Positions 1 through 49,028 of a stretch of 64,000 bases of DNA are shown in pieces. Under the pieces are notes generated by a model, which did not search any database, was not told the DNA's origin, and saw nothing but the letters and a program-made list of their open reading frames with translations. This DNA comes from Obrimoposthia wandeli. Lineage: Eukaryota. The translations under genes were made by a program, and so were the position numbers. The DNA lies in the NCBI GenBank assembly GCA_977020255.1, contig CDROCS010001004.1, positions 1 to 64,000 on the forward strand, read 5' to 3'. The first letter of the stretch is position 1. Every line of letters begins with the position of its first letter.

Positions 1-347
1 GTCATTTGTTCGCGTCCTGTCAATCGAACCCAATCGATAACAGACTCTTGTGTGCGAGGCATTATTTCAAACCTAACAGGAGTTTGAGTTTTCTGTTGTA
101 ATATCATAGCTCGAGATTGAATTATCGTACCTAGAAATACATCTCTAATTTTTAAGCTAATGAAATCACAGGATCGCAATTTACTATCAATTGCGAGATC
201 AAACATCGCCAGTTCACGATAGCATTGTTTAAGTTGTAGCCTTATTCTGATTTCCCATATTTCTTTAAGCTTAAGCGGTTTCTTTTGCCCTACCAATTTA
301 CCTTTGTTCCATGGTACTTTCGAAGCATTGTTGTATTGGGTCGCCAT
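1..347 (-). CDS. Tyrosine recombinase/integrase, 5' part (runs off the window)
   Basis: Not in the ORF track. Manual translation from the ATG at 347 gives MATQYNNASKVPWNKGKLVGQKKPLKLKEIWEIRIRLQL...AIDSKLRSCD...LQQKT; SKLRxCD and QQKT correspond to the catalytic Arg and Lys regions of short phage-integrase-family proteins. Confidence 0.85.
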   Translation of the reverse strand, partial: MATQYNNASKVPWNKGKLVGQKKPLKLKEIWEIRIRLQLKQCYRELAMFDLAIDSKLRSCDFISLKIRDVFLGTIIQSRAMILQQKTQTPVRFEIMPRTQESVIDWVRLTGREQM

Positions 348-429
348 GATAGTCACCTTTATCGTGTTATGGAGACTTTAGTATTATATTTCTCATGAAG
401 AGCGTAAACCCTGCTTTAGGTGACTGTTA

Positions 430-446
430 CGAGAACGGAAATGACA
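430..446 (+). repeat. 30-bp palindromic site no. 1, left part (split by IS1182; remainder at 2205-2221)
   Basis: Removing the IS gives CGAGAACGGAA-ATGACACA-AAGCGGACATT, compared with AATTTCTACAA-ATGACACA-AAGTTGCCATT at 20280. Confidence 0.6.
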
Positions 447-2204
447 CAGACTGTGTGAAAACTATTGATTACCTTTTGATCTAAGCTCTAGCTACTTATG
501 ATCGATCAATCTTAATGTTATCGCCTATTAAACCATCACTTTTAGTATAATGATATGGTCAGCCAAACCATAGGGTAAACGTGATGGCACACCATATTTT
601 AGGCCAGTCAAGAACACAAACTACCTTGTTCCCTGAAGTACTTGATGACTTTGTTACTGAAGATAATTCCGTTCGAGTCGTGGATGTATTTGTAGAAAGT
701 TTAAACCTTGAAACACTTGGGTTTAAGCGCGTTATCGCTAAAGATACTGGCCGCCCAGGCTACCACCCAGCCATCCTCCTAAAACTCTATATCTATGGTT
801 ATCTCAACCGTATTCAATCTTCTCGGCGCTTAGAAAAAGAAAGTCATCGCAACGTTGAATTGATGTGGCTGCTGGGTCGATTAATGCCAGACTTTAAAAC
901 AATTGCAGACTTCAGAAAGGATAATGGCAAAGGTATAAGAAGCGTGTGCCGTCAGTTTGTAGAGATGTGTCGCCAGATGAATATGTTCAGCGAATCACTC
1001 TTCGCTATTGACGGCAGTAAATTCAAGGCCGTCAACAACAAATCAAAGAATTACACACCCAGCAAAGTGCAGTTCCATATTGACCGCGTTGAGAAGAATA
1101 TCCAAAAATACTTAAGTCAAATGGATAGCAAAGACAAAGATGAAAAGGAGACGTCAAACACTGTCTCAACCTCAAAGTTAGCATGGCTTGAACAGCGATT
1201 AGTGGAGCTTAAAGCGCTTGAAGTAGAAGTGAATGCACATCCAGACAAGCAGATATCACGAACTGACCCTGATGCCCGCTTAATGAAGACACATCACATG
1301 CAAAGGCAGGTTTGTTATAACGTGCAAAGTGCTGTAGATACAAAGCACCACTTGATTGTTGCACACGATATCGTGATGACAACTGACAGAGGCCAACTGA
1401 CTTTAGTAGCAGAACAGGTTCAAGAAACATTATGTAAAAAAGATATCACCATTATTGCTGATAAAGGCTATTTCAGCCGAATTGATATCAAGGCGACACA
1501 AGACTTAGGCATGACGGTAAATGTTCCGCAAATCGATACATCAGGTGCGGCAAAGAAAGGCATATTCAACAAATCGTTATTCAAATACGACAAGGTCCAA
1601 GATATCTATATATGCCCTGCGGGTGAGGCATTACCCTATCGTCGAAAAGTGACAGAGAAAGGCCTCGAACAGAAAGTTTACGTTAACCCAGCTGCTTGCC
1701 GTGATTGCACGATCAGGGATAAATGCACGACATCATTAAAGGAGCCTAGGAAAATGAGGCGCTGGATTTATGAAGAAGAGATTGACGCCATGCAACAGCG
1801 ACTCGATGATGATTCAAATATACCCGTACTAAGAAAACAAACTGTAGAGCATCCGTTTGGCACGATTAAAATGTGGATGGGTGCGACACACTTCTTAATG
1901 AAGCGCAAAAAGAATGTGAGTATAGAAATGAATTTGCATGTGCTGGCTTACAACCTAAAACGCATGATGACGATACTGGGAACAACTGGGTTAATGGAAG
2001 CGATCAGACAATAAAGGTACATTTAGCTTCAAATTACGCCATAAAACACCTCAAAACAGCATATTTATCATTATTAGCTCACCTAAGCCTTATAAAACTA
2101 ATATTCCGTTCAAATGTTAATATTCGGTGATTAAGTCATTTAACAGGTTAAAAAGCATACTGAACGATGTTTAATGGTCTTATTCTGAGTTTTCACACAG
2201 TCTG
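447..2204 (+). mobile_element. IS1182-family insertion sequence, intact
   Basis: Perfect 17-bp terminal IR CAGACTGTGTGAAAACT (447-463 / 2188-2204), flanked by GACA at 443-446 and 2205-2208; encodes a transposase. Confidence 0.9.
581..2014 (+). CDS. IS1182-family DDE transposase
   Basis: 477 aa; GRPGYHP..LLKLYIYGY, PDFKTIADFR, AIDGSKFKA, IIADKGY and VEHPFGTIK motifs. Confidence 0.92.
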   Translation: MMAHHILGQSRTQTTLFPEVLDDFVTEDNSVRVVDVFVESLNLETLGFKRVIAKDTGRPGYHPAILLKLYIYGYLNRIQSSRRLEKESHRNVELMWLLGRLMPDFKTIADFRKDNGKGIRSVCRQFVEMCRQMNMFSESLFAIDGSKFKAVNNKSKNYTPSKVQFHIDRVEKNIQKYLSQMDSKDKDEKETSNTVSTSKLAWLEQRLVELKALEVEVNAHPDKQISRTDPDARLMKTHHMQRQVCYNVQSAVDTKHHLIVAHDIVMTTDRGQLTLVAEQVQETLCKKDITIIADKGYFSRIDIKATQDLGMTVNVPQIDTSGAAKKGIFNKSLFKYDKVQDIYICPAGEALPYRRKVTEKGLEQKVYVNPAACRDCTIRDKCTTSLKEPRKMRRWIYEEEIDAMQQRLDDDSNIPVLRKQTVEHPFGTIKMWMGATHFLMKRKKNVSIEMNLHVLAYNLKRMMTILGTTGLMEAIRQ

Positions 2205-2399
2205 GACACAAAGCGGACATTTAGTCTGAGTGAATTTAAGAATTAAAAGGTATGTTTAATAGGAGGTTAGAAATTGGGTGATTGCTAACTATTTACTAAA
2301 TTTCATATAAAAAGCTGGTTATTACAGGATAAATTATTTTCAATAGATACAATTATTATAAATAAAGTTCAATGACTTTAAGTTGCAAGGAGAATTATT

Positions 2400-4436: not shown

Positions 4437-4466
4437 TACATCTGCTTTGTGTCAACTATAGCCCTC
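4437..4466 (-). repeat. 30-bp palindromic site (reverse spacer)
   Basis: TACATCTGCTT-TGTGTCAA-CTATAGCCCTC; inverted relative to the site at 2205-2221, so the two bracket the GGDEF-EAL gene. Confidence 0.55.
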
Positions 4467-4671: not shown

Positions 4672-4701
4672 AATGGCGGCTTTTGGCCGAAACCTGCCTC
4701 T
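4672..4701 (+). repeat. 30-bp palindromic site
   Basis: AATGGCGGCTT-TTGGCCGA-AACCTGCCTCT. Confidence 0.6.
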
Positions 4702-5150
4702 CGTCCTTCACTGTAAAAAGGACAGGAATGGCCGTTAACTGCCACCGATTTTAAACGCTATTTTGTTTCACTAGCTCCAAATTTTGATTATACAAATCAC
4801 CATATAAATGACAACAATAGTACAGCATTTAAGATAAAACCTTTAAAAATCAATATACGACTTCGGGTTAGAAACCCGCCACAAGTTAATTCAAGAGTGT
4901 TCTATAAATCAGTAATATGAAGCCAGTAATTGTATTTTTTGAAATCCAATAATTTTTATCCATCGATACCAAATTTATACTACTCCACAATCCATATGTA
5001 TCCCCATGCAAAGTTGGAGAGGGCTATATCTCCTTTTCAATTTATCCTTTTCTATTCCTCCTCTTCAACTTTAATGCCCTGTGATGTGGCTTAATGAACT
5101 TGTACACCAAAATGGGATAAAATATCGCATGATTTAAAATGGTGTAAACA

Positions 5151-6322
<1,172 letters not shown>

Positions 6323-8791: not shown

Positions 8792-8869
8792 TCTTTCTTC
8801 TCCAAATTTACGCGCTTTACTAAAAGATAAAAGTAACTCTAAAAACGCTGAATATGATTAATACTAGTT

Positions 8870-9022
8870 CATTGCTGTCCGGTTAAAAAGTGTAAGCCCT
8901 CTAACTCGTTGATTTGTGGTTTTCTAGCATCGTAAATTGGATTTTTTTCAGCCAAATAACAGTTGTCGTTAACGTAAAATCAATGAGTTAAAGAACAACA
9001 AAAATTAAACCGGACACTAATG
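8870..9022. mobile_element. 153-bp MITE, IS4-like ends (copy 1)
   Basis: TIRs CATTGCTGTCCGGTT / AACCGGACACTAATG; perfect 9-bp TSD ATACTAGTT (8861-8869 / 9023-9031). Confidence 0.85.
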
Positions 9023-9072
9023 ATACTAGTTATAAAAAATCACTACTAAAGCGATAACCGCTTAGTAAAAGG

Positions 9073-13902: not shown

Positions 13903-15819
13903 GTGAGTAAGCAAAGAGCACTCGATGTCATCTGCCTTGGCCGCGCCGCAGTCGATTTATACGGCGAGCAAATAGGTAGCCCTCTACAAGATATGTCTAG
14001 TTTTGCCAAATATTTAGGCGGGTCTTCTGCCAACATCGCGTTTGGTACTGCAAGGCTTGGTTTAAAATCAGCCATGCTAACCCGTGTTGGCAACGAGCAT
14101 ATGGGCACTTTTGTACGCGAAGAGCTAGCCCGTGCAGGAGTTGATACCTCACAAATTGTGACTGACCCTGCGCGTTTAACCGGCTTAGTTATTTTAGGTA
14201 TTAAAGATCAAGAAACTTTCCCACTGATCTTTTATCGCCAAGATTGTGCAGACATGGCGATTAGCGAGCAAGATATTAACGCTGATTTTATTGCCTCAAG
14301 CCAATCATTACTGATCACCGGTACTCACTTCTCCACGCCTGAAACTTATGCTGCGAGCACTAAAGCGATTCAATATGCTAAAGCTGCGGGCACCAAAGTG
14401 ATTGTCGATATTGATTATCGCCCAGTGCTTTGGGGCTTAACCAGTTTAGGTGATGGCGAAACGCGCTTTATCTCATCTGATAGCGTCTCTAAGCATTTAC
14501 AAACTATTCTGCCTGATTGCGATTTAATTGTCGGCACAGAAGAAGAAGTACATATTGCCGGTGGCACCACTGACACTATCGCGGCTTTAAATAAAATTCG
14601 CTCATTAACGGATGCCAGCATTGTACTCAAGCTAGGGCCATTAGGCTGCACCGTGCTAGATGGCGCTATTCCTAGCAGCATGCAAGATATCGTCCCTTTT
14701 ACCGGGGTACGTGTTGATGTGCTAAATGTTCTTGGCGCAGGCGATGCTTTCCTGTCAGGATTTTTACGCGGCTGGTTACAAGGTACTGATCACCAAACTA
14801 GTGCTGCTTTCGCCAATGCTTGTGGCGCTTTAGTGGTTTCTCGCCACGGTTGTGCACCGGCGATTCCATCAAGTGAAGAGTTAGATTATTACTTAGCCAA
14901 TAGTGCTGATATTCCACGCCCTGATTTAGATGATGAATTAAATTACTTACATCGCGTCACTACTCGCCCGCCTAAGCAATGGCACGAAATATGCGGCTTA
15001 GCGTTTGATCATCGCAAGCAATTTTTTGATATGGCGATTGCAGCAGGCGCCGACTCTAAACGCATTCAACCTTTAAAGCAGTTATTAGTCAAAGCCGCTG
15101 CATTAGGCGCGAAACAAGCAGGACTTGAGGGTAATGTCGGCGTATTAATTGATGATACTTACGGCCAAGATGCGCTCAATGACGTGACAGGCCAAGGTTG
15201 GTGGATTGGTCGCCCTGTTGAGCTGCCTTCATCACGCCCTATCGAATTAGAAGGTGGCCGCTCTATTGGTGACCGCTTAAAAAGCTGGCCGCGTGAACAT
15301 GTTGTAAAATGTTTAGTTTTTTATCATCCTGATGATTCACTAGAGATGCTATTACAACAAGAGCGCCAAATTAAAGAGCTTTACCAAGCGTGTTGTAGCA
15401 GCGGCCATGAAATGCTGTTAGAGCTTATTCCACCACAAACCATGGCGATTGACGATGATACAATGCCGCGCGCTGTAAGCCGCATATACAACTTAGGTGT
15501 GCGCCCAGATTGGTGGAAGCTTCCTGGTATGCGCCCTAATAGCTGGCAGCAAATCACTGATATTATCGCAACACGTGCACCGCATTGTCGTGGTGTCGTA
15601 ATGCTGGGGCTTGATGCTCCGGTGGCGCAGTTACAAGAAAGCTTTAATCACAGTACCGGTTTTGATATTTGCAAAGGCTTTACCGTAGGGCGTACTATTT
15701 TTGGCGAGCCCAGCCGCCAGTGGTTAAGTAACCAGTTAGATGATCAACAATTTGTCGACGCTGTTGCAGCTAATTATGTTGAGTTGATTGGCTATTGGCG
15801 CAATCGCACGATTAACTAG
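13903..15819 (+). CDS. iolC: 5-dehydro-2-deoxygluconokinase fused to a C-terminal DUF2090-type domain
   Basis: PfkB motifs (GGSSANIA, DIDYRP, NVLGAGDAF) plus LAFDHR...DWWKL...GFTVGRTIF domain. Confidence 0.9.
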   Translation: MSKQRALDVICLGRAAVDLYGEQIGSPLQDMSSFAKYLGGSSANIAFGTARLGLKSAMLTRVGNEHMGTFVREELARAGVDTSQIVTDPARLTGLVILGIKDQETFPLIFYRQDCADMAISEQDINADFIASSQSLLITGTHFSTPETYAASTKAIQYAKAAGTKVIVDIDYRPVLWGLTSLGDGETRFISSDSVSKHLQTILPDCDLIVGTEEEVHIAGGTTDTIAALNKIRSLTDASIVLKLGPLGCTVLDGAIPSSMQDIVPFTGVRVDVLNVLGAGDAFLSGFLRGWLQGTDHQTSAAFANACGALVVSRHGCAPAIPSSEELDYYLANSADIPRPDLDDELNYLHRVTTRPPKQWHEICGLAFDHRKQFFDMAIAAGADSKRIQPLKQLLVKAAALGAKQAGLEGNVGVLIDDTYGQDALNDVTGQGWWIGRPVELPSSRPIELEGGRSIGDRLKSWPREHVVKCLVFYHPDDSLEMLLQQERQIKELYQACCSSGHEMLLELIPPQTMAIDDDTMPRAVSRIYNLGVRPDWWKLPGMRPNSWQQITDIIATRAPHCRGVVMLGLDAPVAQLQESFNHSTGFDICKGFTVGRTIFGEPSRQWLSNQLDDQQFVDAVAANYVELIGYWRNRTIN

Positions 15820-15854
15820 TTTCGAGTTTCGAGAATTTTAAAAGAGAGAGAACA

Positions 15855-17711
15855 ATGAAAACGATCAAGCTGACTATGTCGCAAGCGCTGGTTAAATTTT
15901 TAATCGCGCAAAAAACCATTGTCGACGGTGAAGTACAACCGATGTTCGCCGCTATGTTTGCTATTTTTGGCCACGGTAATGTAGCCGGTATGGGCGAAGC
16001 GCTGTATCAAGTTAAAGATCAGCTGCCAACACTGCGCGCACATAACGAACAAGGCATGACACACGCTGCCATCGCCTATGCTAAAGCGAAAAACCGCCAG
16101 CAAATGATGGCCTGCACCACCTCAATTGGCCCAGGTGCTGCCAACATGATCACCGCTGCGGCCCTAGCACACGCTAACCGTTTACCGGTATTACTATTGC
16201 CAGGCGATACTTTTGCCAGCCGTACGCCTGACCCAGTACTGCAACAGCTAGAGCATTTTGGCGATCCGACTATTTCGACCAACGATTGTTTTCGCCCTGT
16301 TAGCCGCTATTTTGATCGCATTACCCGCCCTGAGCAAATCATCAACAGCTTGCCCGTTGCCATGCAAACCCTGCTAGATCCAGAATTTTGTGGCCCAGTT
16401 ACCATTGCCTTATGCCAAGATGTACAAGCACAAGCATACGATTATCCGGTTAGCTTTTTTGCAGAAAAAGTTCATTATCAGCGTCGTCAAAATGCTGATG
16501 ATGCAGAATTACAACGTGCAATCGAGCTATTAAGAAAAGCTAAGCAGCCACTGCTAATTGCCGGTGGTGGCGTACATTACTCTGGCGCGGTTGAGCAGTT
16601 ATTAAACTTCGCGCAAGCGACAGGTATTCCGGTTGCTGAAACACAAGCGGGAAAAGGCGCAATGCGTTGGGATCATCCTAACTACGTTGGCGCAATTGGC
16701 GTAACAGGCAGCAACGCCGCTAATTTAATGGCCGAAAAAGCCGATTTAGTAATTGCTGTAGGCAGCCGCTTACAAGATTTCACTACTGCTTCGCGCACCT
16801 TGTTTGAGCGCGAAGACACTCCGCTTATCCAGCTAAACATTGCCCGTTTTGATAGCATCAAACACAACAGCGTGCCTTTGCTAGTTGATGCCAAAGTGGG
16901 CCTAACCTCACTACAAAATGCATTATCTGATTGGCAAGTTAGCAGCGAATGGCAGCAACAAGGCCAAGCGGCAATCGCCAAATGGAATCAATATTACCAA
17001 GATGTAACTAGTGCTCAAATTCAACAAACACCTACCGGCTTACCAACAGATGCACAAGTTCTAGGCGCTGTTAAACGCAACAGTGCAGCCCAAGATGTGA
17101 TCGTTTGTGCCGCGGGCGGCTTGCCTGGCGAACTACATAAGCTATGGCGTACTGATCATGCTAAAGCCTATCATGTTGAATACGGCTACTCTTGCATGGG
17201 TTATGAAATTGCCGGTGGTTTAGGGGTTAAAATGGCCACTCCTGACAGCGATGTAATTGTAGTAGTCGGGGATGGCTCTTATATGATGCTCAACTCTGAA
17301 CTGGCCACCAGCGTGATGCTCGGTTACAAAGTGATCGTGGTAGTACTTGATAATCGCGGCTACGGTTGCATCAACAGATTACAACAGGGGACTGGCGGTG
17401 CAGCTTTTAACAACCTATTAGAAAACTGCCAAGCAATTGATGGCGGCGCACCTAAAATTGATTTCGCAGCACACGGTGCATCAATGGGCGCTCTAGCTGA
17501 AAAAGTAGCTAACATTGCTGAACTTGAACAAGCGATGCTTAGAGCAAAAGCAGCTGATCGCTCTTATCTAATTACTTTAGATACTGACCCAAGTGTCACT
17601 AGTGAAGGCGGATGTTGGTGGGATGTTGCGGTTGCAGAAGTTTCAGCGCGCGATGAAACAAACACTGCTCACCAAGGTTATATAGCTGGCAAGCAGCAGC
17701 AGCCATATTAA
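15855..17711 (+). CDS. iolD: 3D-(3,5/4)-trihydroxycyclohexane-1,2-dione acylhydrolase (TPP-dependent)
   Basis: IFGHGNV, HNEQGM, EYGYSCMGYE and GDGSY motifs. Confidence 0.95.
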   Translation: MKTIKLTMSQALVKFLIAQKTIVDGEVQPMFAAMFAIFGHGNVAGMGEALYQVKDQLPTLRAHNEQGMTHAAIAYAKAKNRQQMMACTTSIGPGAANMITAAALAHANRLPVLLLPGDTFASRTPDPVLQQLEHFGDPTISTNDCFRPVSRYFDRITRPEQIINSLPVAMQTLLDPEFCGPVTIALCQDVQAQAYDYPVSFFAEKVHYQRRQNADDAELQRAIELLRKAKQPLLIAGGGVHYSGAVEQLLNFAQATGIPVAETQAGKGAMRWDHPNYVGAIGVTGSNAANLMAEKADLVIAVGSRLQDFTTASRTLFEREDTPLIQLNIARFDSIKHNSVPLLVDAKVGLTSLQNALSDWQVSSEWQQQGQAAIAKWNQYYQDVTSAQIQQTPTGLPTDAQVLGAVKRNSAAQDVIVCAAGGLPGELHKLWRTDHAKAYHVEYGYSCMGYEIAGGLGVKMATPDSDVIVVVGDGSYMMLNSELATSVMLGYKVIVVVLDNRGYGCINRLQQGTGGAAFNNLLENCQAIDGGAPKIDFAAHGASMGALAEKVANIAELEQAMLRAKAADRSYLITLDTDPSVTSEGGCWWDVAVAEVSARDETNTAHQGYIAGKQQQPY

Positions 17712-20194: not shown

Positions 20195-20279
20195 GTTTTA
20201 GGTCCTTTTGTGATCGAGGGATAAAGATTCATATCAAGTATTAAAATATCATACTGGTTGATAAATTCTAGTGCTTAGA

Positions 20280-20309
20280 AATTTCTACAAATGACACAAA
20301 GTTGCCATT
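20280..20309 (+). repeat. 30-bp palindromic site
   Basis: AATTTCTACAA-ATGACACA-AAGTTGCCATT. Confidence 0.65.
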
Positions 20310-20389
20310 TTTAACGCCCATCACACAGGCGAGCAACTTGTTGCGAGTCCAAAGCACGAAGTGCTTGATTGTGCTGGCGCTTGTTATGC
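20309..20389 (-). repeat. Integron attC-like site downstream of the GNAT gene
   Basis: On - strand: GCATAAC-AAGCG-CCAGCACA ... TGTGTGA-TGGGC-GTTAAAA (R''/L''/L'/R' geometry with an extra base in L''). Confidence 0.6.
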
Positions 20390-20431
20390 ACTAGGTTCGA
20401 CATAAAATTTGAGTTTCTTTGGATTTCTATG

Positions 20432-20890
20432 CTAGGGTTCTTCATTATTCCCAACTGCCTCATGCACTATTGAATTGATAACTCTTACCGATGTTTCATT
20501 GTCGAAATCACATGTAATTAATGCTTTTGCTTTCAATTTGTTATGAACAATAAACTTTAAAAGTGCTTTGGCAACACCTTTTCGCCTTTCAGAAGGCCGA
20601 GTCTCATAACCTATGTGACCGATATACTTCCTTATAAAATCGTTGTCACTCAACCGTAATCTGATGGCACCAAGAATTCTACGTTCATCAACTGCAAAGT
20701 AGGTTTCGTATGGTCCCCAACCTTCCGGCAGGTTTCTACCCGTTGCGGCATCTATTACTAAATATAGGCTCTTCTTGGCATCTTTTATGTCGTTCTTGTA
20801 ATGTTCCATGCCTGATTCAAAACATTCCAATATATACGATTCATAATCATCTAGTAACTCAATGGAAGCAGGAATTATTTTTATGGCCAT
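20432..20890 (-). CDS. GNAT-family acetyltransferase
   Basis: GAIRLR...IGHIGY.TRPSERRKG motif. Confidence 0.85.
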   Translation of the reverse strand: MAIKIIPASIELLDDYESYILECFESGMEHYKNDIKDAKKSLYLVIDAATGRNLPEGWGPYETYFAVDERRILGAIRLRLSDNDFIRKYIGHIGYETRPSERRKGVAKALLKFIVHNKLKAKALITCDFDNETSVRVINSIVHEAVGNNEEP

Positions 20891-20925
20891 CTTTCGTCCT
20901 TGTAAAACGCCGTAAAAAGTACAGT

Positions 20926-20987
20926 GTCAGATCTTTCCTTTTGACTAAAGAGCAAGAAGAAAGACCCCATGCAGATCTGACCCCATT
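20926..20987. repeat. Inverted GTCAGATCT doublet with a GACCCC end
   Basis: GTCAGATCT (20926-20934) and AGATCTGACCCCATT (20973-20987). Confidence 0.5.
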
Positions 20988-21102
20988 ACTTTTGTTCAGG
21001 TTGCTGCTGTAAGTGATCAAGTAATCTGTTCCAGATGAGATAACGACGCGTTGTTCTATAGTAGACAGTCGCGACGAGGTTATAAATATTGCTGTTTCGA
21101 CA

Positions 21103-21762
21103 TCAAGTGTCAAAGTTATGTGGTGCAAATGGTTTGACTAGCGCTCGCTCGAGCAGATCCAGCAGATCTTGACCATAGAACATATCTCCATCCAGAACAA
21201 ATGTTGGCGAGCCAAGTGCGCCAAGTGCAATCGCGTCTTTAGTGTTCTTTTCGTAGATTTTTATAATCTCAGGGCTAAGAGCAATATCTAATAATGGTTT
21301 AGGGTCAATGCCGACTTCAAGCACAGATTTGGCAAGTGTATCGACATCCGTAAGATCAGAATCATAGCGCCAATGCGATTCTAGAACAGCAAAAGCTAAT
21401 TTCCCCATATCCACACCTTGCTCACCCCCAGCGACCAGCATGCCGCTAACCAAATCAAGATTTTCGTGATGATGCGTTGGTGTATGCGAAATAATATCCA
21501 TACTACGAAACTCTGCCCAACGTTCGATTTCACGACCAAAATAGTAATTTTTATGGATATCGCTGCGTTGGGAAAACTGCTGCGCTCCGGAAGCGTAAAC
21601 CACCGTATCTAGCTTTATAGGTCGGTGCAAAAGTTGGACATTATGAGCCGACATGATCTCCATCATCCGTTTGAAGCCAATATATGCAAAAGCCGAATGG
21701 GCTGAATAGTAGAAATCAATAGTCCTTACATTGGAGGTCGTCTTCTGAGATTCTCGGATCAT
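21103..21762 (-). CDS. DsbA-family / 2-hydroxychromene-2-carboxylate isomerase (GST-kappa-like)
   Basis: IDFYYSAHSAFAY, GSPTFV and DMFYGQD motifs. Confidence 0.8.
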   Translation of the reverse strand: MIRESQKTTSNVRTIDFYYSAHSAFAYIGFKRMMEIMSAHNVQLLHRPIKLDTVVYASGAQQFSQRSDIHKNYYFGREIERWAEFRSMDIISHTPTHHHENLDLVSGMLVAGGEQGVDMGKLAFAVLESHWRYDSDLTDVDTLAKSVLEVGIDPKPLLDIALSPEIIKIYEKNTKDAIALGALGSPTFVLDGDMFYGQDLLDLLERALVKPFAPHNFDT

Positions 21763-21926
21763 ATCGCAAATGTCTCCTAGTTTTTTGTTGCATACTTCAA
21801 GGTGGGACGATTGCCAGTCACCAACGTTAAAGAAGATTTTATGTTTTGAATTTTACTCGCCAATTTTATACCCCACGCTCAAACCTATGTCGAGTCAGTT
21901 TCATACGTTTTGGAGCTGTCACGGTT

Positions 21927-22092
21927 TGGTTCCGCCCCTTTGACAGCGCACTAAAAGAAGCACAATCGCCGTAAAGTCCTATTCTATCGATTACGCACCC
22001 ATGGAAAGTGCAGGTATAAACCATAGGTACTTACTACCTTGAAAAACTCAGCTACTGTAAAGGCAAAAGACAAGACGCGACCCCGTTGATTC
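21927..22092. repeat. 166-bp direct repeat, copy 1
   Basis: Matches 23083-23247 with only a few substitutions and one indel; ends GGCAAAAGACAAGACGCGACCCCGTTGATTC. Confidence 0.9.
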
Positions 22093-22109
22093 TCACATGT
22101 TTCTATCAA

Positions 22110-26756: not shown

Positions 26757-26786
26757 GGAGTCTGAAAGTGGCCGAATTCTGCCGTA
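26757..26786 (+). repeat. 30-bp palindromic site
   Basis: GGAGTCTGAAA-GTGGCCGA-ATTCTGCCGTA, followed by GGTT as at 29713 and 31579. Confidence 0.55.
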
Positions 26787-27070: not shown

Positions 27071-27403
27071 TCAGCACAAGCCCTCGAAATTCTCAAAGCC
27101 ATCTGTCGTCTCAGTCAATTCAGCCTCGCAGAGAACGAGCATAGGTCTTACTAAAGGTTCGATATCCTTATCCCAAACTGGCCCTCCGTAAAAACCTTCT
27201 TTGATACTGTCGCGATCTTTAAGGGATGGAAACGCTCGCATCCAATGAACCTTATCCGGATTTTCCAAATCTCTCATGGGGCCAAACACTAGCATCCCTG
27301 CGTCCCGCAATGCTTTGCGATTCTTCTGCTCGAAGAACTCGATGAACTCCTCACGCAGACCAGGCTTAGTTGTGTAATGGCGGATTTCTATAATCATATA
27401 CAT
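27071..27403 (-). CDS. NIPSNAP-family protein
   Basis: EIRHY..KPG..EEF...F, W.RAF and FY.GP.W patterns. Confidence 0.75.
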   Translation of the reverse strand: MYMIIEIRHYTTKPGLREEFIEFFEQKNRKALRDAGMLVFGPMRDLENPDKVHWMRAFPSLKDRDSIKEGFYGGPVWDKDIEPLVRPMLVLCEAELTETTDGFENFEGLC

Positions 27404-27609
27404 TCTACCTTAAATATTTTTGACTCAGGACCTACGCAAGATTAAGCTTCTTAACAACCTATAAATGCTTAATATTTCGCATACGCATTTGTAAAAAAGC
27501 GAGTTTCTCATCAACTTTTTTGCTTTTCAATAATACCGATACTGCAGCAGTTTCTATGCTATTGCTAGGAAATCAAACAATTATTAGCTTAAGTCATAAG
27601 TAGAAGTAA

Positions 27610-27639
27610 TATGTCCGAAAATGGACGATTTCAGCCATC
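27610..27639 (+). repeat. 30-bp palindromic site
   Basis: TATGTCCGAAA-ATGGACGA-TTTCAGCCATC. Confidence 0.65.
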
Positions 27640-27672
27640 CGTTAAAATATTCCAAAGAGACTGGAGTTGGCA

Positions 27673-27823
27673 CTGGCTGTGTGAAAACTCGTCAAAACAC
27701 GCAAATTACGCCTTCAATATGCGTCTATAAAATTACCGTATAAATAAAATCAATAACTTAGAGCATGTCGATTTTCTTAGAAACAGCAAGTTAACTGCTT
27801 AATCTGAGTTTTCACACAGTTCG
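27673..27823. mobile_element. 151-bp MITE with IS1182-type ends, inserted in a 30-bp site
   Basis: Ends CTGGCTGTGTGAAAACT / AGTTTTCACACAGTTCG, followed by GACACAAAGCTGCC, the same register as the IS at 2204. Confidence 0.8.
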
Positions 27824-27898
27824 GACACAAAGCTGCCTTTTTAGTGTTCCTGATAAAAGGCGCTTTCAGAACCAAATGTGCGTCTAGCATATTAGGGC

Positions 27899-28861
27899 TT
27901 ATCTCTTTGTTCTGTTGTTTTTACTTCTAAAAAGATTCCGCCAAGCTTTAGGTGTTGTATCAAATCGCTGTTTAAAGTGTTTGCGAAAAATTTGTTCCGA
28001 ACTAAAGCCTGCTTGTTCTGATATTTCGGTAATCGACAAAGCTGTTGACTCAAGTAACTCTTGGCTACGATTTAGTCGTATATTATTTAACCATAGGTTG
28101 AAGCTAGTTCCTTGATTAGCTTTAAAACTACGGCTAAAGCTACGAATACTCATCGCGCAATATGAAGCCACCCATTCTACAGGGTAATCATCTGTTAAAT
28201 TAGCCACAATGTATTCTATTAAGTTTGCCAAGCGTTCATCACTCGCTCGTTCAATAGTTGGTTGCTCTATGTATTGATTTTGACCGCCATTCCTTTCTGG
28301 TGATGAGACCATAATCCTCGCTATTTGGTTCGCTTTCTTTATGCCGTAAAAATGTTTAACTATATACAAACAACAATCTATTGCCGCAGCACTTCCAGCT
28401 GAGGTAATAATATTTTCTTGCACTATAAACAGTGGGTTACTTTCAAAATGAACTAGAGGAAATTTTAATGGAAAATCCTCACTCATCTTCCAATGCGTTG
28501 TTGCACGTAGTCTATCTAATAAGCCTGAATAACCTAACGCGTAAGCTCCCAAGCATAAACCAGCTATTATTTTTTTATTTTTGGATGAATTTTGTACAAG
28601 TTTAATGAGTTGCGCACTAGGGGCTCTCTCAGGTTCCCAACTGGGGAAAATAACAATATCAGCATGTTTAATAATAGAAAGATCTTCTTCTACAATGAAA
28701 CTAAGCCCATTAGCGAAAGACAGTTTACCTGTTTGTTCCGCACAGATTTTTACATCGAATAGTTTCTCATTGTCCAAGACTGCGTCATTGAAAATAGCCG
28801 TAGGGACGGAGAGATGGAACATACTTATTCCGTTATATACAACAATAACAATGTTCATCAT
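27899..28861 (-). CDS. GlxA-family regulator (DJ-1/PfpI plus AraC HTH)
   Basis: GLCLGAY, ATTHW, TSAGSAAAID motifs and AraC C-terminus. Confidence 0.9.
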   Translation of the reverse strand: MMNIVIVVYNGISMFHLSVPTAIFNDAVLDNEKLFDVKICAEQTGKLSFANGLSFIVEEDLSIIKHADIVIFPSWEPERAPSAQLIKLVQNSSKNKKIIAGLCLGAYALGYSGLLDRLRATTHWKMSEDFPLKFPLVHFESNPLFIVQENIITSAGSAAAIDCCLYIVKHFYGIKKANQIARIMVSSPERNGGQNQYIEQPTIERASDERLANLIEYIVANLTDDYPVEWVASYCAMSIRSFSRSFKANQGTSFNLWLNNIRLNRSQELLESTALSITEISEQAGFSSEQIFRKHFKQRFDTTPKAWRNLFRSKNNRTKR

Positions 28862-28960
28862 CTACTTTGGCCTAATAGTAATGTTTTATGTGATTTTAGC
28901 TATTATCCCTCTAAATGAAAGCCTTTAAACTTATTCCATTGAACATATAGAGATATAAAA

Positions 28961-29521
28961 ATGAACGTTGTAATGAGCTATCCACTTGTCGATGAGATTT
29001 TAGAAACCTACAAGCACCTGATTAAAAATGACTATGAGGGCTATCGGAACCATGTAACCCGAATGTTAAATTTTTGTCACTATTTATTGCCAGATATCAC
29101 AATAGAAGAGAGTAAAAAAATACAAATTGCTGCTGTATTTCATGATATTGCATTGTGGACGCATGACAGAGTAGACTATTTAGTACCATCATACCAAGAC
29201 TGCCATCAATACCTTGAATGCGAAAATCTAGAGATTTGGAAAGAAGAGATTCAAATCATTATCGATATGCATCATTTACTCTTTACTTATAAAGGGCCAT
29301 ATGAAAAGTTGGCAGAAGCATTTAGAAAAGCTGATCAAATTGATTTTTCTATGGGCTTAATTAAAAATCGTATTGACAAGATTTTTATCAAAGAGGTGCG
29401 TAATGCGATTCCAAATGGGGGATTTCATAAGACATTAATGCGATTTACTATGGTTCAACTTGGCCGTAACCCGCTCAAACCATTTCCTATGATGCGCTTA
29501 AAGAACATCTATAAAAAATAA
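28961..29521 (+). CDS. HD-domain protein
   Basis: YRNHV.R, AAVFHDI and FRKADQID motifs. Confidence 0.65.
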   Translation: MNVVMSYPLVDEILETYKHLIKNDYEGYRNHVTRMLNFCHYLLPDITIEESKKIQIAAVFHDIALWTHDRVDYLVPSYQDCHQYLECENLEIWKEEIQIIIDMHHLLFTYKGPYEKLAEAFRKADQIDFSMGLIKNRIDKIFIKEVRNAIPNGGFHKTLMRFTMVQLGRNPLKPFPMMRLKNIYKK

Positions 29522-29712
29522 TTTATCTAATTAACAAAGTAGCATTTTAACTGAATGTAAATGTCCATTGATATAGAAATGTTTTCTTGGTGCTAAAGTC
29601 TAAAGCAAGAGACAAGTATAAAAATAAAATGCTCTTTTTCTTTTATCCAATAACTCAACTCTCCATTCAACATTATACAATTAAGCTTAAACAGCAAATG
29701 AAAACATAACAA

Positions 29713-29742
29713 AACTTCCGCCTTTAGCCGATTTCAGCCATA
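29713..29742 (+). repeat. 30-bp palindromic site
   Basis: AACTTCCGCCT-TTAGCCGA-TTTCAGCCATA. Confidence 0.65.
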
Positions 29743-29860
29743 GGTTATATAGCTGGGTTGGGCACATTGCGAACGCTAATAACACTTCCTTGAATACACT
29801 GGTTATTTGCTAGCGGGGCTCAAATAGATGCCCTATTCCAGTGAATTTCTAGGTTTGACT

Positions 29861-30226
29861 CTATTCAGCTTTTTCATCACTGAACACTGGTAATAATTCT
29901 TTTTCTCCCCAGTTTTTCAGTGCCATTATGATAGGTTTTAAAGTTTGCCCTTTTTCAGTCAAAGAATACTCTACTTTAGGTGGTACTTGAGGATACACCT
30001 CCCGATTAACCAAACCATCTTTCTCAAGCTCCCTAAGTTGGCGAGTTAACATCCTTTGGGTTACCTTGGGAAGTAGCTTATTTAACTCATTAAACCTCTT
30101 CAAATCACTGCATAAGTGGTAAAGGATTACGCCTTTCCATTTTCCACCAATAACTTCAAGCGAAGCCTCTACCCCACAATCAGTCGTGAGGTTTCTTTGC
30201 TGAATTTTGTCTCTCATAGTATACAA
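29861..30226 (-). CDS. HxlR-family winged-helix regulator
   Basis: IGGKWK, RFNEL, QRMLT..LRELE and PPKVEYSLT motifs. Confidence 0.92.
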   Translation of the reverse strand: MYTMRDKIQQRNLTTDCGVEASLEVIGGKWKGVILYHLCSDLKRFNELNKLLPKVTQRMLTRQLRELEKDGLVNREVYPQVPPKVEYSLTEKGQTLKPIIMALKNWGEKELLPVFSDEKAE

Positions 30227-30399
30227 AGTGTGGGTACCTTACATAAATGTGCATTCTAACATTTAGTATACTTGCTTGATATCATATTGCTATTGATTCA
30301 GCTGAGAGATATGAACAAAATTTAGCTAATTAAACTACCTTTACAAAAAATTCTGAATTCTGGGCTATATTGACACCAGATCTATAGAGGATACTTTAA

Positions 30400-31416
30400 A
30401 TGAAAGCTATCGCCGTATATGAAGCACTGCCTACAAGCAACTCTAACTGCTTTGAACAAATAAAGTTAGAAACTCCTGTCCCAGCCGGACGTGATATTCT
30501 TGTTAGAATTGATGCTATATCAATCAACCCAGTAGATTCAAAAGAAAGACTAGGCTTATCTGGTCGCGTAGAAGATCCTCTTGTTCTAGGTTGGGACACA
30601 TGCGGAGAAGTCATTGCTATTGGGGAAAACGTCAAAAGTTTCAAACTGGGCGACATGGTAATATCAGCAGGTGATATCTCACGACAGGGCAGTTACGCTG
30701 AATATCAATTAATTGATGAAAGGATAGTTGGTCATAAACCTAAGGATCTATCTAATGAAGAAGCAGCTACCCTTCCTTTAACTACATTGGTTGCTTGGGA
30801 GTCTTTGTTTGACCGTTTGGAGATAGCAAAGAATGATGCAGATAGTCCTGCCGTTCTTATAATCGGCGCTGCTGGCGGACTGGGGTCCATGGCTATTCAA
30901 TTTGCGCGTCAGTTTTCAAATTGTACTATTATTGCAACTGCTTCCCGACCAGAATCTCAGGAATGGTGTGTCACTTTGGGGGCTCATCACGTAATTGATC
31001 ATTCTGGTGATTTGATAGGACAATTAAAAAGTATTGGATTTGACAATGTGCCTTATATTTTGAATTGCAGTAATAATGTTCCATATTGGGAGATAATGAG
31101 TAAACTAGTTTCTCCGGAAGGAGCTATTTGTCTTGTCGCTAGCTCAAAAGAAAAGTTAGATTTGGACATTTATATGGAAAAAAGTGTTCGGATTAATTAC
31201 GAACTGATGTTCACTAGATCGTTATTTCGCACTGAAAAGATGCATCTTCAAGGGCAGTTATTAAACAAACTAGATTCAATGATCTCGACTGGAGTTATCA
31301 AGCATGTGATGACAGAAAGTTTTGGCCCCATGACCACTGAATCCTTGAGAAAAGCTCATGCTCATATTGAAAAAGGCCGTATGCTTGGCAAATTATCTCT
31401 CTCTGGCATGACGTAG
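30400..31416 (+). CDS. MDR-family NADPH:quinone reductase-like (zinc-binding ADH family)
   Basis: SINPVD, LGWD, AATLPLT..AWE and IIGAAGGLGS motifs. Confidence 0.88.
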   Translation: MKAIAVYEALPTSNSNCFEQIKLETPVPAGRDILVRIDAISINPVDSKERLGLSGRVEDPLVLGWDTCGEVIAIGENVKSFKLGDMVISAGDISRQGSYAEYQLIDERIVGHKPKDLSNEEAATLPLTTLVAWESLFDRLEIAKNDADSPAVLIIGAAGGLGSMAIQFARQFSNCTIIATASRPESQEWCVTLGAHHVIDHSGDLIGQLKSIGFDNVPYILNCSNNVPYWEIMSKLVSPEGAICLVASSKEKLDLDIYMEKSVRINYELMFTRSLFRTEKMHLQGQLLNKLDSMISTGVIKHVMTESFGPMTTESLRKAHAHIEKGRMLGKLSLSGMT

Positions 31417-31578
31417 TAATTAAGATTTACAAAGCTTAATGTGTACAAACGAAATTCGAGGATTTTTTTAACAGAACTATAATTTGAATTAGCTCTCAAA
31501 TTGGAGTCAGCCGGAGCTTCTGCATTTGATTCAAAATATACTTTTTTGAAAATATCTCAGAATATTTATTTAGTCGAT

Positions 31579-31608
31579 AACTTCCTCTATTGGCTGATCA
31601 GTGCCATA
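31579..31608 (+). repeat. 30-bp palindromic site
   Basis: AACTTCCTCTA-TTGGCTGA-TCAGTGCCATA. Confidence 0.6.
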
Positions 31609-31677: not shown

Positions 31678-31687
31678 TACTTGATAT

Positions 31688-31765
31688 CATTGCTGTCCGG
31701 TTAAAAAGTGTAAGCTCTTTACTCAATGAGTTAAAGAACAACAAAAATTAAACCGGACACTAATG
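31688..31765. mobile_element. 78-bp internally deleted MITE (copy 2 of the 8870 element)
   Basis: Same TIRs as copy 1; its own 9-bp TSD ACTTGATAT (31679-31687 / 31766-31774). Confidence 0.85.
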
Positions 31766-31791
31766 ACTTGATATAAGTTTTTAAGCATCAA

Positions 31792-34233: not shown

Positions 34234-34263
34234 AAAGGATGCTATTGGCCGTTATTTAGCTGC
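34234..34263 (+). repeat. 30-bp palindromic site (right arm degenerate, overlapped by an attC-like remnant to about 34300)
   Basis: AAAGGATGCTA-TTGGCCGT-TATTTAGCTGC; - strand reads ATGCAGCCGCCGCA...GCAGCTAA. Confidence 0.45.
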
Positions 34264-34855: not shown

Positions 34856-35308
34856 TTATGAGCGCACTATAAAGTGCTTCATTTCAATTAGTTGATGCCC
34901 GCCCATTGCTTCAACTTCTCGAATGTATTCAAAGCCAAAGTGTTCATAATAACTGTGCAGATACTCATGGGCATGAATCTCTATTGAAGTTATTCCGATT
35001 TCACGAATATACGCCATTAACGCTTTAAACATTTTTGAAGAGACACCCGAACCTCTATACTCTTTAATCACAGCGACTCTAGCCATTATTGAAGCACCGT
35101 TTTCATTCACGGTTAACCTAGCAGTAGCCACCAATGCTTCGTTATCCATTATCCTTTTCATCTGATATTCATCAAAAGCGCAAGCGACCTAGTTATTAAG
35201 ACTGGCTTACTATCTAAATTCAATATTTTGCTCAACTGTAAAGACTTGAAAACGGATAGCTTGAGCCTTTTTAATAATTTCAGAACTGTTTCCAATTGTA
35301 ATTTCCAT
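34856..35308 (-). pseudogene. ElaA/YjcF-like GNAT interrupted by in-frame stops
   Basis: MEITIG...IRFQVFTVEQNI (ATG 35308) is in frame with VATARL...RVAV..EYRGSG but separated by TAG TAA and TAG. Confidence 0.7.
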
Positions 35309-39433: not shown

Positions 39434-40129
39434 TTATGGCTGATAGGCGACGTATGAACGAGCATTAACTACCACACCACTTTCATTGAGCTGGTAAATT
39501 TCCACCACTGCATGCAGTGCTCGTGCCTGCTCTAATTTTTTCCATGCATTGGTTAAATCGTTGACGCTATTTGTTGGTTGCGCTAACGTTTGGTAGGCTC
39601 CTTGCGGCATTGGCAAGGTTTTCAATTGTGCTTTTGTAAAATCTTGTTTGGCTAGCCCACAACTAATTAACAGTTTATTTTGCGCCACTTGTTGATATAC
39701 CAGATAGAAATTTAATTGCGCCCCTTGTTTAAACCCAGTAAAAAGATCTGCTGTATTAGTTAGCTCTGTCATTAAAGCGACTGCCGTGCTCTCGGCATTG
39801 GTAAAAGAACTACTTCTTGACAGCCCTAGCAAAGTTTTAGGTAAGTGCTGCTCTTTATCCGCTAAAAGCTTTCCATTGGCTGAAGGCAGTTCTTTAACTA
39901 AGGGCTTTTTTTCCGCTAAAGGCTTTTCTTCAACTAGAGGCTTCATTTGAGCTAAAAGCTCCTTTTTTGCTAAGGGCTCTTTTTTTACTAAGGGCTTCTT
40001 TTTAGCTAAAGGTCTTTTTACCTCTGTTGTTGGCTGCTCTGTCGGCTTAATCAGATTTTGCGCCCACACCACTGTCCATACTGAGCCGACAATCAAACCG
40101 GTAAACAGCATAGATTTCAACATATTCAT
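39434..40129 (-). CDS. Exported protein with a hexapeptide-repeat linker and GyrI-like C-terminal domain
   Basis: Signal/TM segment, seven PL[A/V]xxx units, P.G.Y...AW...EIY pattern. Confidence 0.5.
   Translation of the reverse strand: MNMLKSMLFTGLIVGSVWTVVWAQNLIKPTEQPTTEVKRPLAKKKPLVKKEPLAKKELLAQMKPLVEEKPLAEKKPLVKELPSANGKLLADKEQHLPKTLLGLSRSSSFTNAESTAVALMTELTNTADLFTGFKQGAQLNFYLVYQQVAQNKLLISCGLAKQDFTKAQLKTLPMPQGAYQTLAQPTNSVNDLTNAWKKLEQARALHAVVEIYQLNESGVVVNARSYVAYQP
39887..40012 (-). repeat. 18-bp coding tandem repeat (about 7 units)
   Basis: PLAKKK PLVKKE PLAKKE LLAQMK PLVEEK PLAEKK PLVKEL. Confidence 0.8.
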
Positions 40130-43734: not shown

Positions 43735-43919
43735 ATTTCAATATATCTAATCAATAATATCATAATAAAACATGCCCACTTAGTCCCAACTCTTGCCTTT
43801 ACTGTACAAATGATTAGATATCAGCCGACGATCCATGAGCAGTCATATTATAAAACCGTGCTCAGTATCCAATTTTATCATTCAATACGTAATCAGCTCC
43901 TGAACTTTTCTTTACATAC

Positions 43920-47705: not shown

Positions 47706-47735
47706 ATGGCCTACTTTGTGTCAGCAACGGTTAAT
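47706..47735 (-). repeat. 30-bp palindromic site (reverse spacer)
   Basis: ATGGCCTACTT-TGTGTCAG-CAACGGTTAAT. Confidence 0.55.
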
Positions 47736-48106
47736 TAAGCTGTTAAACTTCTTGGCTACATTACTAATCAGCACTTTTCAGTCATTCAAAATTTTTGATT
47801 ATATTCGCTTTAATTGATGTCGCCCATTTTTTGGCAATATATGAAGATTGATAGGCTAAATAGTATGTAGTTTCATTCACACTCTCCTTAAATATGTAAA
47901 GCCCTTTACTATTGGCATGATCTACAAAGTATTCTGGTAAAACACCATTTCACCTTTGGCTAGCAGTGAATTTGTCTCATAACAATTGCTATCCGGTCAC
48001 CAGAACATAATAAATGTTGACAATAAAAACAAAAAACAAACAATAAATTGACTTTTAAGAACTTTAAATACTATATTGTCGACAATGTTAATTAGAGGCT
48101 GTAGAC

Positions 48107-48796
48107 ATGTGGTATAATTTATTTGGTTCAATCAATACAATTTTAATCTTTGTCAGCTTGTACGGCATTTTTTTACAACTAAATAATATATGGTTGCGAA
48201 AAAAAAATAATAAAACAAAAGTAACCGATATACTGTCTCAAAATCAGTTCACCATGAGCTTCTTAGCTTATTTTTCCTTTTTTATATACGGTTACAGTGT
48301 CGATGACTTCAATCATTATATCGTCTGGCCAAGACTTATCGCTTCACTAATTGTTGCATTAATATTATTTGAAATTTGGATGGATAGAAAATCGAACAGT
48401 TCCCTTGCTTGTATGCTGCTTAGTGTCCTTTGCTTCGTTCTTGGAGTCTTAGGGCTTCTTTTTTACAGTGAGTACTCAAGCCAGAGTAAAAATATTTCTA
48501 CTGCATTAATCGTTATCATTACGGCACTATTAGCTCAAGGGTATATACATCAAATAAAATTAATACTGAACTCAGGAAAAACTGGCGCTATAGACATTAG
48601 AATGAGTCAATTCATTCTCATGATGGACGTCTCCACGATAGCTTTTGCTATGGCCATGGGAATGAACGAAGGGTGGCCGTTAATGCTGCTTGCTGTAGTG
48701 AGTGGAATAACGAAAATAATTATTATGTATCTATTTAGATGGGTCCGCTTAAGCTCTGCCGCAGAAAACCGACGCTTAAACGGTAACATTAATTGA
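48107..48796 (+). CDS. About 7-TM membrane protein with two PQ-loop/MtN3-like halves
   Basis: By-eye similarity of both halves to the SemiSWEET at 6538. Confidence 0.45.
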   Translation: MWYNLFGSINTILIFVSLYGIFLQLNNIWLRKKNNKTKVTDILSQNQFTMSFLAYFSFFIYGYSVDDFNHYIVWPRLIASLIVALILFEIWMDRKSNSSLACMLLSVLCFVLGVLGLLFYSEYSSQSKNISTALIVIITALLAQGYIHQIKLILNSGKTGAIDIRMSQFILMMDVSTIAFAMAMGMNEGWPLMLLAVVSGITKIIIMYLFRWVRLSSAAENRRLNGNIN

Positions 48797-48998
48797 GTTT
48801 AAATGTGATTGTGCCGAATAATTAATACTTTATTGGCTTCTAGACGTTTATATAATGAAGGTGTTATTTGCTTTAACTACTTATTTTAATTACCTACTTT
48901 TATACATAAAGCGCACTCTACTATAATAAAGCCTATATTTTTTAGAAACGTCAATTATGCGCTATTTCGGGTATTTTACTAATTACAGACTCAAGCGA

Positions 48999-49028
48999 AA
49001 TGTCCGCTTTGCGTTATAACCAATAATT
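48999..49028 (-). repeat. 30-bp palindromic site (reverse spacer)
   Basis: AATGTCCGCTT-TGCGTTAT-AACCAATAATT; left arm is the exact reverse complement of 2211-2221. Confidence 0.6.

Follow-up and report, generated by a model that had tools for sequence, protein, structure and literature searches.

The first 64,000 nucleotides of contig CDROCS010001004.1 (assembly GCA_977020255.1 of Obrimoposthia wandeli), referred to here as the window, carry the 5' part of a gene for a small tyrosine recombinase and an array of dispersed 30-bp sites. These 30-bp elements are probably the core recombination sites of a large family of tyrosine recombinases of about 207 residues, with modules being swapped at the site spacers. 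Each site has two inverted arms of about 11 bp (AAyGkCyGC... on the outer side) around an asymmetric spacer of 6–8 bp. This reading is carried by the common design of the sites, their fixed relation to the recombinase gene, their intergenic position, and the concentration of rearrangement ends in their spacers. The recombinase gene is itself a module of about 740–850 bp, bounded by two inverted sites that are usually of unlike spacer class. The window is an accessory region, in which about a dozen sites stand between unrelated one- and two-gene units. A first-pass annotation of the window had proposed that the recombinase shuffles these units, which is supported, as far as sequence comparison reaches, by a site scan, by co-occurrence of sites and recombinase genes, and by breakpoints in homologous systems.

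Association of the sites with the recombinase gene

The comparison set comprised 80 metagenome loci and two contigs encoding recombinase homologues (520 kb). In about 50 of the 80 loci, a 30-bp element with the layout of the window sites and the consensus AACGTCCGCTTTGGGTCGATAAGCGCCCTT is located 72–160 nt upstream of the start codon. This consensus differs throughout from that of the 28-bp dif site (11-6-11), and its arms bear no likeness to those of dif. A position weight matrix (PWM) of the upstream elements scores 123 sites at 18 bits or more across the 520 kb, where Markov simulations give an expectation of 0.3, and 49 kb of unrelated control loci contain no sites at this threshold. Only 23 of the 123 sites fall inside open reading frames (ORFs) of at least 100 aa, though such ORFs make up 76% of the sequence. 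A second site follows just past the stop codon (+646 to +667); the upstream site has the sense of the gene in 44 of 44 cases and the downstream site is inverted in 43 of 44. The link between such sites and recombinases with a PWNKGK motif, anticipated by the first-pass annotation, is therefore present in these relatives. The spacer hexamers of the metagenome loci are mainly GGGTCG (80 sites, plus 15 with GGGTCA) and TGGCCG (48 sites), and the two sites flanking a gene are mostly of unlike class. Short convergent doublets of the two classes also recur, with a spacing of 25–50 nt.

The recombinase family

The window fragment of 115 residues has 1679 homologues, and those with a precomputed Pfam record carry PF00589. 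Full-length relatives are 206–208 aa in length and retain R, K, HxxR, H, and Y, the full catalytic signature that places the family in the tyrosine recombinase superfamily (PF00589); the window copy shows the first R and K alone, the gene being cut by the window edge. The family consists of a catalytic domain with a short basic N-terminal segment (PWNKGKLVGQK...), and full-length members are 68–78% identical to each other across very different hosts and G+C contents. According to structure comparison, XerA and XerH are the nearest solved structures, with weak but specific matches over residues 35–193. The family aligns only to positions ~97–260 of the Xer models and thus lacks the N-terminal core-binding domain. 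That the enzyme is neither IntI nor XerC/D, as had been proposed, is confirmed by scores far below the respective cutoffs: 26.6 bits vs. 265 (TIGR02249) and 20 vs. 435 (NF011946) for the integron-integrase models, 61 bits vs. 335 for XerC, and 45 vs. 330 for XerD. The tyrosine-type DNA invertase model NF007371 is likewise missed (29.7 bits vs. 222). NCBIfam holds no family dedicated to these recombinases, and all of its curated cutoffs are far from reached. An AlphaFold model from nine sequences had a pLDDT of 44 and was unusable.

The metagenome homologues P0006, P0054, P0079, and P0090 share one break point (...LLLGHTKL), after which a common foreign tail follows (DYLP.RTMS). The coding sequence just past this break (TVRY) resembles a site arm, and to judge from these sequences the break may be a recurrent insertion or recombination point within the gene.

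Breakpoints and gene modules

Homology breakpoints were defined as alignment ends, not contig ends, in an all-against-all comparison of the recombinase loci. Of 86 internal breakpoints, 43 are no more than 15 nt from a site centre (29 of them no more than 8 nt), vs. a mean of 1.4 (maximum 6 in 500 trials) for random positions at the 15-nt limit; breakpoints had been expected in the spacer, and this is where they concentrate. In the alignments, identity begins exactly at one spacer, takes in the inner arm and the gene, and reaches as far as the other spacer; from the outer arms onwards the loci are unrelated. The recombinase gene with its two half-sites is thereby a discrete unit of ~740–850 bp, found in at least 8 lineages and in different surroundings.

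Cargo is seen in the Pseudomonas aeruginosa megaplasmid pPA942-IMP45, in which the recombinase gene has an inverted pair of TGGCCG sites around it and a third one, in direct orientation, is found 4.7 kb upstream. The two direct sites enclose, beside the recombinase gene, a ptxD-phnCDE-LysR operon that is present at 98% identity in ~600 other plasmids (575 from Klebsiella, others from Citrobacter, E. coli, Stenotrophomonas, and Pseudomonas). The common ptx stretch ends at 7268 and 11927 of the locus L087, each time inside a spacer. With the exception of pPA942-IMP45, the copies examined (L088, L091, L092) have the same surrounding sequence; the context being common to the Klebsiella, Stenotrophomonas, and p727-IMP copies, these represent a single event with two ends. 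A search for the empty ptx site in Klebsiella plasmids was swamped by IS26 and ISKpn26 matches. The regions compared between Caballeronia SBC1 and SBC2 are free of structural differences (99.99% identity over 40.6 kb) and so are uninformative.

Sites in the window

Allowing one mismatch at most, the window has six matches to the core TGGCCGANNNCNGCC vs. 0.35 expected, all of them on the forward strand and between genes. Two PWMs were applied: one trained on the window sites and scored by leave-one-out, and an independent one built only from sites upstream of the metagenome recombinase homologues. In this AT-rich genome the window spacers are of two classes, GTGTCA and TGGCCGA. The recombinase gene, the sites, and the candidates are as follows (bits refer to PWM scores).

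1–347, reverse strand: 5' part (115 codons) of the small tyrosine recombinase gene, which runs off the window edge (translation)
430–446, reverse strand: recombinase-proximal site, gene-side half, GTGTCA type (reconstituted 30-mer 11.7 bits with the independent PWM; leave-one-out 29.3)
2205–2221, reverse strand: recombinase-proximal site, distal half (first 4 nt are the target duplication)
4437–4466, forward strand: site, GTGTCA type (15.9 bits with the independent PWM, second only to 4672 in the window)
4672–4701, forward strand: site, TGGCCG type (21.2 bits, top site of the window; leave-one-out 23.1)
4717–4746, forward strand: site, TGGCCG type, tandem to 4672 (leave-one-out 22.2)
20280–20309, reverse strand: site, GTGTCA type (10.2 bits with the independent PWM; leave-one-out 20.7)
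25801–25830, forward strand: weak site, TGGCCG type (core with 1 mismatch; leave-one-out 4.1; 3.8 bits with the independent PWM)
26757–26786, forward strand: site, TGGCCG type (both PWMs; homology with contig L089 stops at 26767, the spacer edge)
26802–26831, reverse strand: weak inverted partner, forming a convergent doublet with 26757 (3.9 bits with the independent PWM; leave-one-out 4.0)
27610–27639, forward strand: site, TGGCCG type, spacer variant TGGACGA (11.9 bits; leave-one-out 25.8)
27656–27672, reverse strand: split inverted partner site, first half (reconstituted site 9.7 bits)
27824–27841, reverse strand: other half of the split site (reconstitution)
29713–29742, forward strand: site, TGGCCG type, spacer variant TAGCCGA (leave-one-out 18.3; 4.9 bits, top 0.02% of positions)
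31579–31608, forward strand: site, TGGCCG type, spacer variant TGGCTGA (leave-one-out 14.5; 6.8 bits)
43771–43800, forward strand: candidate extra site, intergenic (20.1 with the subtype PWM alone)
47706–47735, forward strand: site, GTGTCA type (leave-one-out 13.0; 5.8 bits)
48947–48976, forward strand: candidate extra site, 52 nt ahead of 48999 (16.7 with the subtype PWM)
48999–49028, forward strand: GTGTCA-like site with a weak right arm (leave-one-out 15.2, yet -1.4 bits with the independent PWM)
61727–61756, reverse strand: candidate site, intergenic (9.5 bits; leave-one-out 14.0)

Leave-one-out scoring with the window PWM backs 4672, 26757, 27610, 29713, and 31579, together with the tandem copy at 4717; the result is borderline for 20280 and weak for 25801 and 34234, while 32356 fails. 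A GTGTCA-like spacer marks a second subtype, to which belong the recombinase-proximal site, 20280, 27656/27840, 4437, 47706, 48999, and the new 61727; all of these pass leave-one-out, and the PWM of this subtype further proposes 43771 and 48947. The independent PWM, run over both strands, gives seven window positions of at least 10 bits vs. 1.2 expected. Six of the seven fall on 4437, 4672 (both strands), 20280, 26757, and 27610, and the seventh, 20724, is inside a gene. Sites 29713, 31579, 47706, 4717, 25801, and 26802 are among the top 0.03% of positions with this matrix, and 32356, 34234, and 48999 are not significant.

Some 14 dispersed sites had been listed in the first-pass annotation, of which about 11 are backed by the two PWMs together; 32356 does not hold, and 34234 and 25801 are weak. 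Every supported site is intergenic, as claimed, and the inositol catabolism (iol) cluster is indeed free of them. On the other hand, the array was said to end at 49 kb, which the candidate at 61727 contradicts, and the site next to the recombinase was said to have a degenerate arm like that of attI, when after reconstitution it is among the best of the window. Candidates outside the earlier list are 4717, 26802, 43771, 48947, and 61727. The 15-nt core of 4717 recurs without change in L006, ~100 nt ahead of the recombinase gene. The weak site 34234–34263 is kept almost base for base in L089 (5376), a contig of a metagenome-assembled genome (MAG), between DUF6653 and DUF1993 genes; by its conservation it may be an old site or merely a conserved intergenic element.

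The strong TGGCCG-type sites all have one orientation, whatever direction the genes take, and therefore the units between them could leave as circles. The window also has doublets of the same design as those of the metagenome loci, at 26757/26802, 27610/27656, and possibly 31579/31625, with a start-to-start distance of 45–46 nt; position 31625 has only -8.3 bits with the independent PWM. The convergent doublets of the window have a conserved linker in common, and the design of 26757/26802 is found too in L034, L063, L065, L083, and L028. This inverted doublet of 45–46 nt is the junction element between modules.

Insertions in site centres

Two sites had been described as split, as though this were a site design. 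Both are ordinary sites that were hit centrally, one by an insertion sequence (IS) and the other by a miniature inverted-repeat transposable element (MITE) that derives from this IS.

447–2204, forward strand: IS1182-family IS with transposase at 581–2014 (NF033551 426 bits vs. cutoff 270; inverted ends; 4-bp duplication GACA)
27673–27823, no strand assigned: MITE of 151 bp with the ends of an IS1182-family IS (end and flank comparison)

Family membership of the IS is established by both the transposase model and the terminal inverted repeats. Once the inserts are taken out, the two sites reach 11.7 and 9.7 bits, respectively, among the best of the window.

In four independent cases, namely the window IS, the window MITE, L005 (~15665–17273), and L075 (~77), an IS1182-family element with ends like CTGTGTGAAAAC sits exactly at the centre of a recombinase site. 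In L005, an IS with 46–51% identity interrupts a TGGCCG-type site at its central GGCC; in L075, the IS end abuts a half-site. These elements look like a site-hunting IS lineage, comparable to the IS1111-attC elements.

Comparison of the window with a relative

L089 has 84–90% nucleotide identity with the window and is syntenic with window 39.5–32.7 kb and the GST gene. Three modules of the window, parted by sites, are absent from it.

26787–31578, no strand assigned: three modules parted by sites (Pfam; all missing from L089 by synteny)
27071–27403: ABM/NIPSNAP module (Pfam)
27899–29521: GlxA-type regulator and HD module (Pfam)
29861–31416: HxlR and Zn-dehydrogenase module (Pfam)

On the GST side, homology covers the outer arm of 26757 and halts at 26767, the spacer edge, and the single site of L089 at this junction is the best PWM match of the whole contig. 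Variant contigs of the sample diverge at 26754 and 27673, the latter being the centre of the MITE-split site, of which the variant contig has a copy without the MITE. A joint between 29741 and 27651 in the sample contigs was considered as an excision circle; it contains 12 extra letters and was read as another copy of the doublet. The CarG-like gene of the window is truncated at 32693, and the window GNAT gene (34856–35161) is shorter than in L089.

Proposed mechanism and state of this copy

Recombinase dimers would bind the arms, sites with matching spacers would synapse, and strands would be exchanged within the spacer, such that the DNA between any two sites could be excised, inserted, or exchanged as a module. 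Segments between direct sites of like class could leave as circles and re-enter at a like site, and two crossovers could swap segments that lie between unlike sites, in the manner of engineered cassette exchange. The unlike sites around the recombinase gene would guard it against self-inversion and would let it take part in such an exchange through two separate crossovers.

Several observations weigh against recombination at these sites as the explanation of the array. The spacers of 27610, 29713, and 31579 each have a different single-base change, which should hinder recombination among them. The recombinase gene of the window is interrupted by the window edge, and its closest relatives (84–91% identical) end ahead of the HxxR motif. 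Only one end of the difference between the window and L089 is at a site, the other (32693) being inside the CarG-like gene, and two further indels are located away from sites: window 20209–25891 (5.7 kb; GNAT, DsbA, MsrA, 2-oxoglutarate (2OG) oxygenase, and a 292-aa ORF) is without counterpart in L089 and has GGWC microhomology at the joint, and L089 has a PhyH-LysR insert at window 33073. Because the CarG end and these two indels lie away from sites, the site system is one source of rearrangement among others. No excision joint was found among the contigs of the sample, and no recombination was observed directly. Many of the 43 site-centred breakpoints come from a few (~8) recombinase-module lineages and so are not 43 independent events. 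The ptx module is found in just two independent contexts, the second of which is without proper sites at its junctions. Lastly, in three other contigs, homologous GlxA-HD pairs occur without sites beside them.

The window array is probably old and partly decayed, and this copy possibly inactive, because of the single-base spacer changes, the disruption by the IS and the MITE, the low PWM scores (low relative to the metagenome sites), and the truncation of the closest recombinase relatives.

Alternative explanations

The GlxA-HD pairs without sites would also suit a selfish doublet of the MITE or REPIN kind, mobilised by the recombinase, for which the flanked recombinase gene would be the autonomous copy and the intervening genes ordinary host DNA. 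The placement of the recombinase gene between inverted sites recalls that of RAYT genes between REPs, and the recurrence of convergent doublets at 25–50 nt, with a conserved linker in the window, fits as well. Nevertheless, this explanation is unlikely. Homology stops in the middle of the sites and not at the repeat's outer ends; the ptx operon travels as cargo from spacer to spacer; the window and L089 differ in the genes beside a site, not merely in a doublet; and the enzyme belongs to the tyrosine recombinases and not to the HUH transposases. Moreover, seven of eight single sites fold with z near 0 relative to shuffled sequence, the weak site 25801 alone reaching -2.79, and the doublets fold no better than their shuffles (z -1.4 to +0.84). 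REP/REPIN hairpins were excluded by these folding tests.

Dif-like sites served by the host XerC/XerD, with the small recombinase a bystander, were considered in view of the 11-spacer-11 layout and the site-bounded modules, which resemble the pdif modules of Acinetobacter (PMC12907356, PMC7399989). This is very improbable, as the spacers of 6–8 nt have conserved classes of their own (GGGTCG, TGGCCG), dozens of unrelated loci show the sites at a set position and orientation relative to the small recombinase gene, and that gene moves as a unit with its half-sites.

The palindromes could also be operators or other regulatory binding sites, with the recombinase-like protein as a repressor. All sites being intergenic, they could lie in promoters, and the one at a fixed distance upstream of the recombinase start would make autoregulation plausible. 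Equally little probability is given to this explanation: sites 25801, 29713, and 31579 lie between convergent genes, the strong TGGCCG sites point one way regardless of gene orientation, homology breakpoints concentrate at the sites, and the catalytic residues are conserved. A sigma-54 promoter (TGGC..N..GC) was rejected on inspection, the GG-to-GC spacing being one base short.

Least probable of all is a decayed integron cassette array (CALIN) with the 30-bp sites as parts of attC, since, despite a row of small accessory genes of unrelated function, the genes run in both directions and include their own regulators, there is no IntI (the family scores 26.6 bits where 265 are needed), and the scan of the array for R''/R' boxes and hairpin energy was empty, the named attC candidates folding like shuffles.

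Gene content of the window

By its sequence, the window is chromosomal DNA of an Oceanospirillaceae bacterium, with ~40% G+C. The best matches of its GST are an Oceanospirillaceae MAG (92%), followed by Neptunomonas and Amphritea (72–78%). From left to right, it begins with the recombinase fragment, the IS1182-family IS, a GGDEF-EAL gene, an IS3-family element, and the inositol catabolism cluster. The accessory run at 20–36 kb has mutually unrelated genes for GNAT, DsbA, MsrA, 2OG oxygenase, GST, ABM/NIPSNAP, GlxA regulator with HD, HxlR with Zn-dehydrogenase, CarG-like, DUF1993, and DUF6653 proteins, in units that face both directions and bring regulators with them (GlxA and HxlR, for example). 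A Rieske oxygenase adjoining the array has best relatives of just 42–48% in a search of genome contigs, and exact-sequence look-ups of ten window proteins and hemB had no hits in the protein collection.

Other repeats were noted in the window. A 148-nt repeat, of a family separate from the 30-bp sites, has two intergenic copies (21927–22074 and 23083–23230; 97% identical) on either side of the MsrA gene; the second copy separates this gene from that for the 2OG oxygenase. At 8869–9023, in the iol cluster, there is a MITE-like element whose ends are inverted (TCATTGCTGTCCGGTT...), and a shorter copy is found at 31687–31766 by site 31579. At 39861–40017, an 18-nt periodic repeat of at least six units, which would encode a hexapeptide repeat, lies inside a 231-aa ORF (39434–40129) that has no Pfam match.

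Novelty and significance

In the open-access literature, subscription journals being outside the coverage of the search, no description of the recombinase family or of its sites was found. A survey of a plasmid recombinase family refers to members under 200 aa as "most likely defective" (PMC3414803). We tentatively suggest, at somewhat less than even confidence, that the system is a third independent class of bacterial gene cassettes beside integrons and Xer/pdif, widespread on Proteobacteria chromosomes and megaplasmids. In this class, a catalytic-domain-only recombinase of ~207 residues, itself a cassette, would exchange modules via two heterospecific classes of 30-bp double-stranded sites, amounting to a natural recombinase-mediated cassette exchange (RMCE), and the system would have its own "site-hunter" IS1182 lineage. 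If this is true, many short "integrase" genes would be an engine of modular gene exchange rather than junk, and the occurrence of ptxD-phnCDE-type operons in unrelated plasmids with clean junctions would be accounted for. The site PWM together with the recombinase would then be a searchable signature for accessory-gene hot spots, and a very small recombinase with natural heterospecific sites would be a candidate tool for genome engineering.

Comparison with known systems

Like the pdif modules of Acinetobacter plasmids and chromosomes, which are gene modules bounded by sites of 11-spacer-11 layout (PMC12907356, PMC7399989), the modules here are bounded by short sites with two inverted arms and a spacer, the sites occurring in both orientations, and recur in different replicons with their junctions at sites. 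In contrast to pdif, which is served by the host XerC/XerD pair, the enzyme is self-encoded, ~207 aa in length, and limited to the catalytic domain; it is outside the XerC/XerD models. The arm and spacer sequences also differ, there are two heterospecific spacer classes, and the recombinase gene is itself a module.

With integrons, the system shares a tyrosine recombinase that has a site next to its gene, unrelated accessory units arrayed between recombination sites, and unit junctions made of a pair of inverted simple sites, as in attC. However, there is no match to the IntI model and no IntI-specific domain, no attC that folds as a single strand, no common promoter, and no series of promoterless, one-direction cassettes after attI/Pc; the units carry their own regulators and face both ways, and the recombinase gene is mobile within the system. 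The first-pass description as integron-like therefore stands for the functional resemblance, whereas the sites are double-stranded simple sites rather than attC hairpins and the attI analogy was wrong.

In engineered RMCE with heterospecific lox or FRT sites, a segment likewise lies between two sites of unlike spacer that do not recombine with each other and that each have a cognate elsewhere; RMCE is a laboratory design, whereas here the arrangement is natural and its working mode is one that we infer. REP/REPIN-RAYT systems also place an enzyme gene between a pair of inverted short palindromic repeats, other copies of which are scattered between genes, often as inverted doublets. RAYT, on the other hand, is an HUH (Y1) single-strand transposase acting on hairpins, whereas the gene associated with the present sites is PF00589, the repeats do not fold, and the crossovers are central. 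The FimB/FimE invertases resemble the present family in their size of ~200 aa, in being essentially a catalytic domain alone, and in their short inverted sites, and differ in that the match to their model is weak here, there is no invertible promoter segment, and the sites delimit whole gene modules. The system thus belongs to the site-specific-recombination module systems and is functionally closest to pdif/Xer modules and integrons, yet it has neither the defining enzyme family nor the site type of either, and there is a fair chance that it merits a class of its own.

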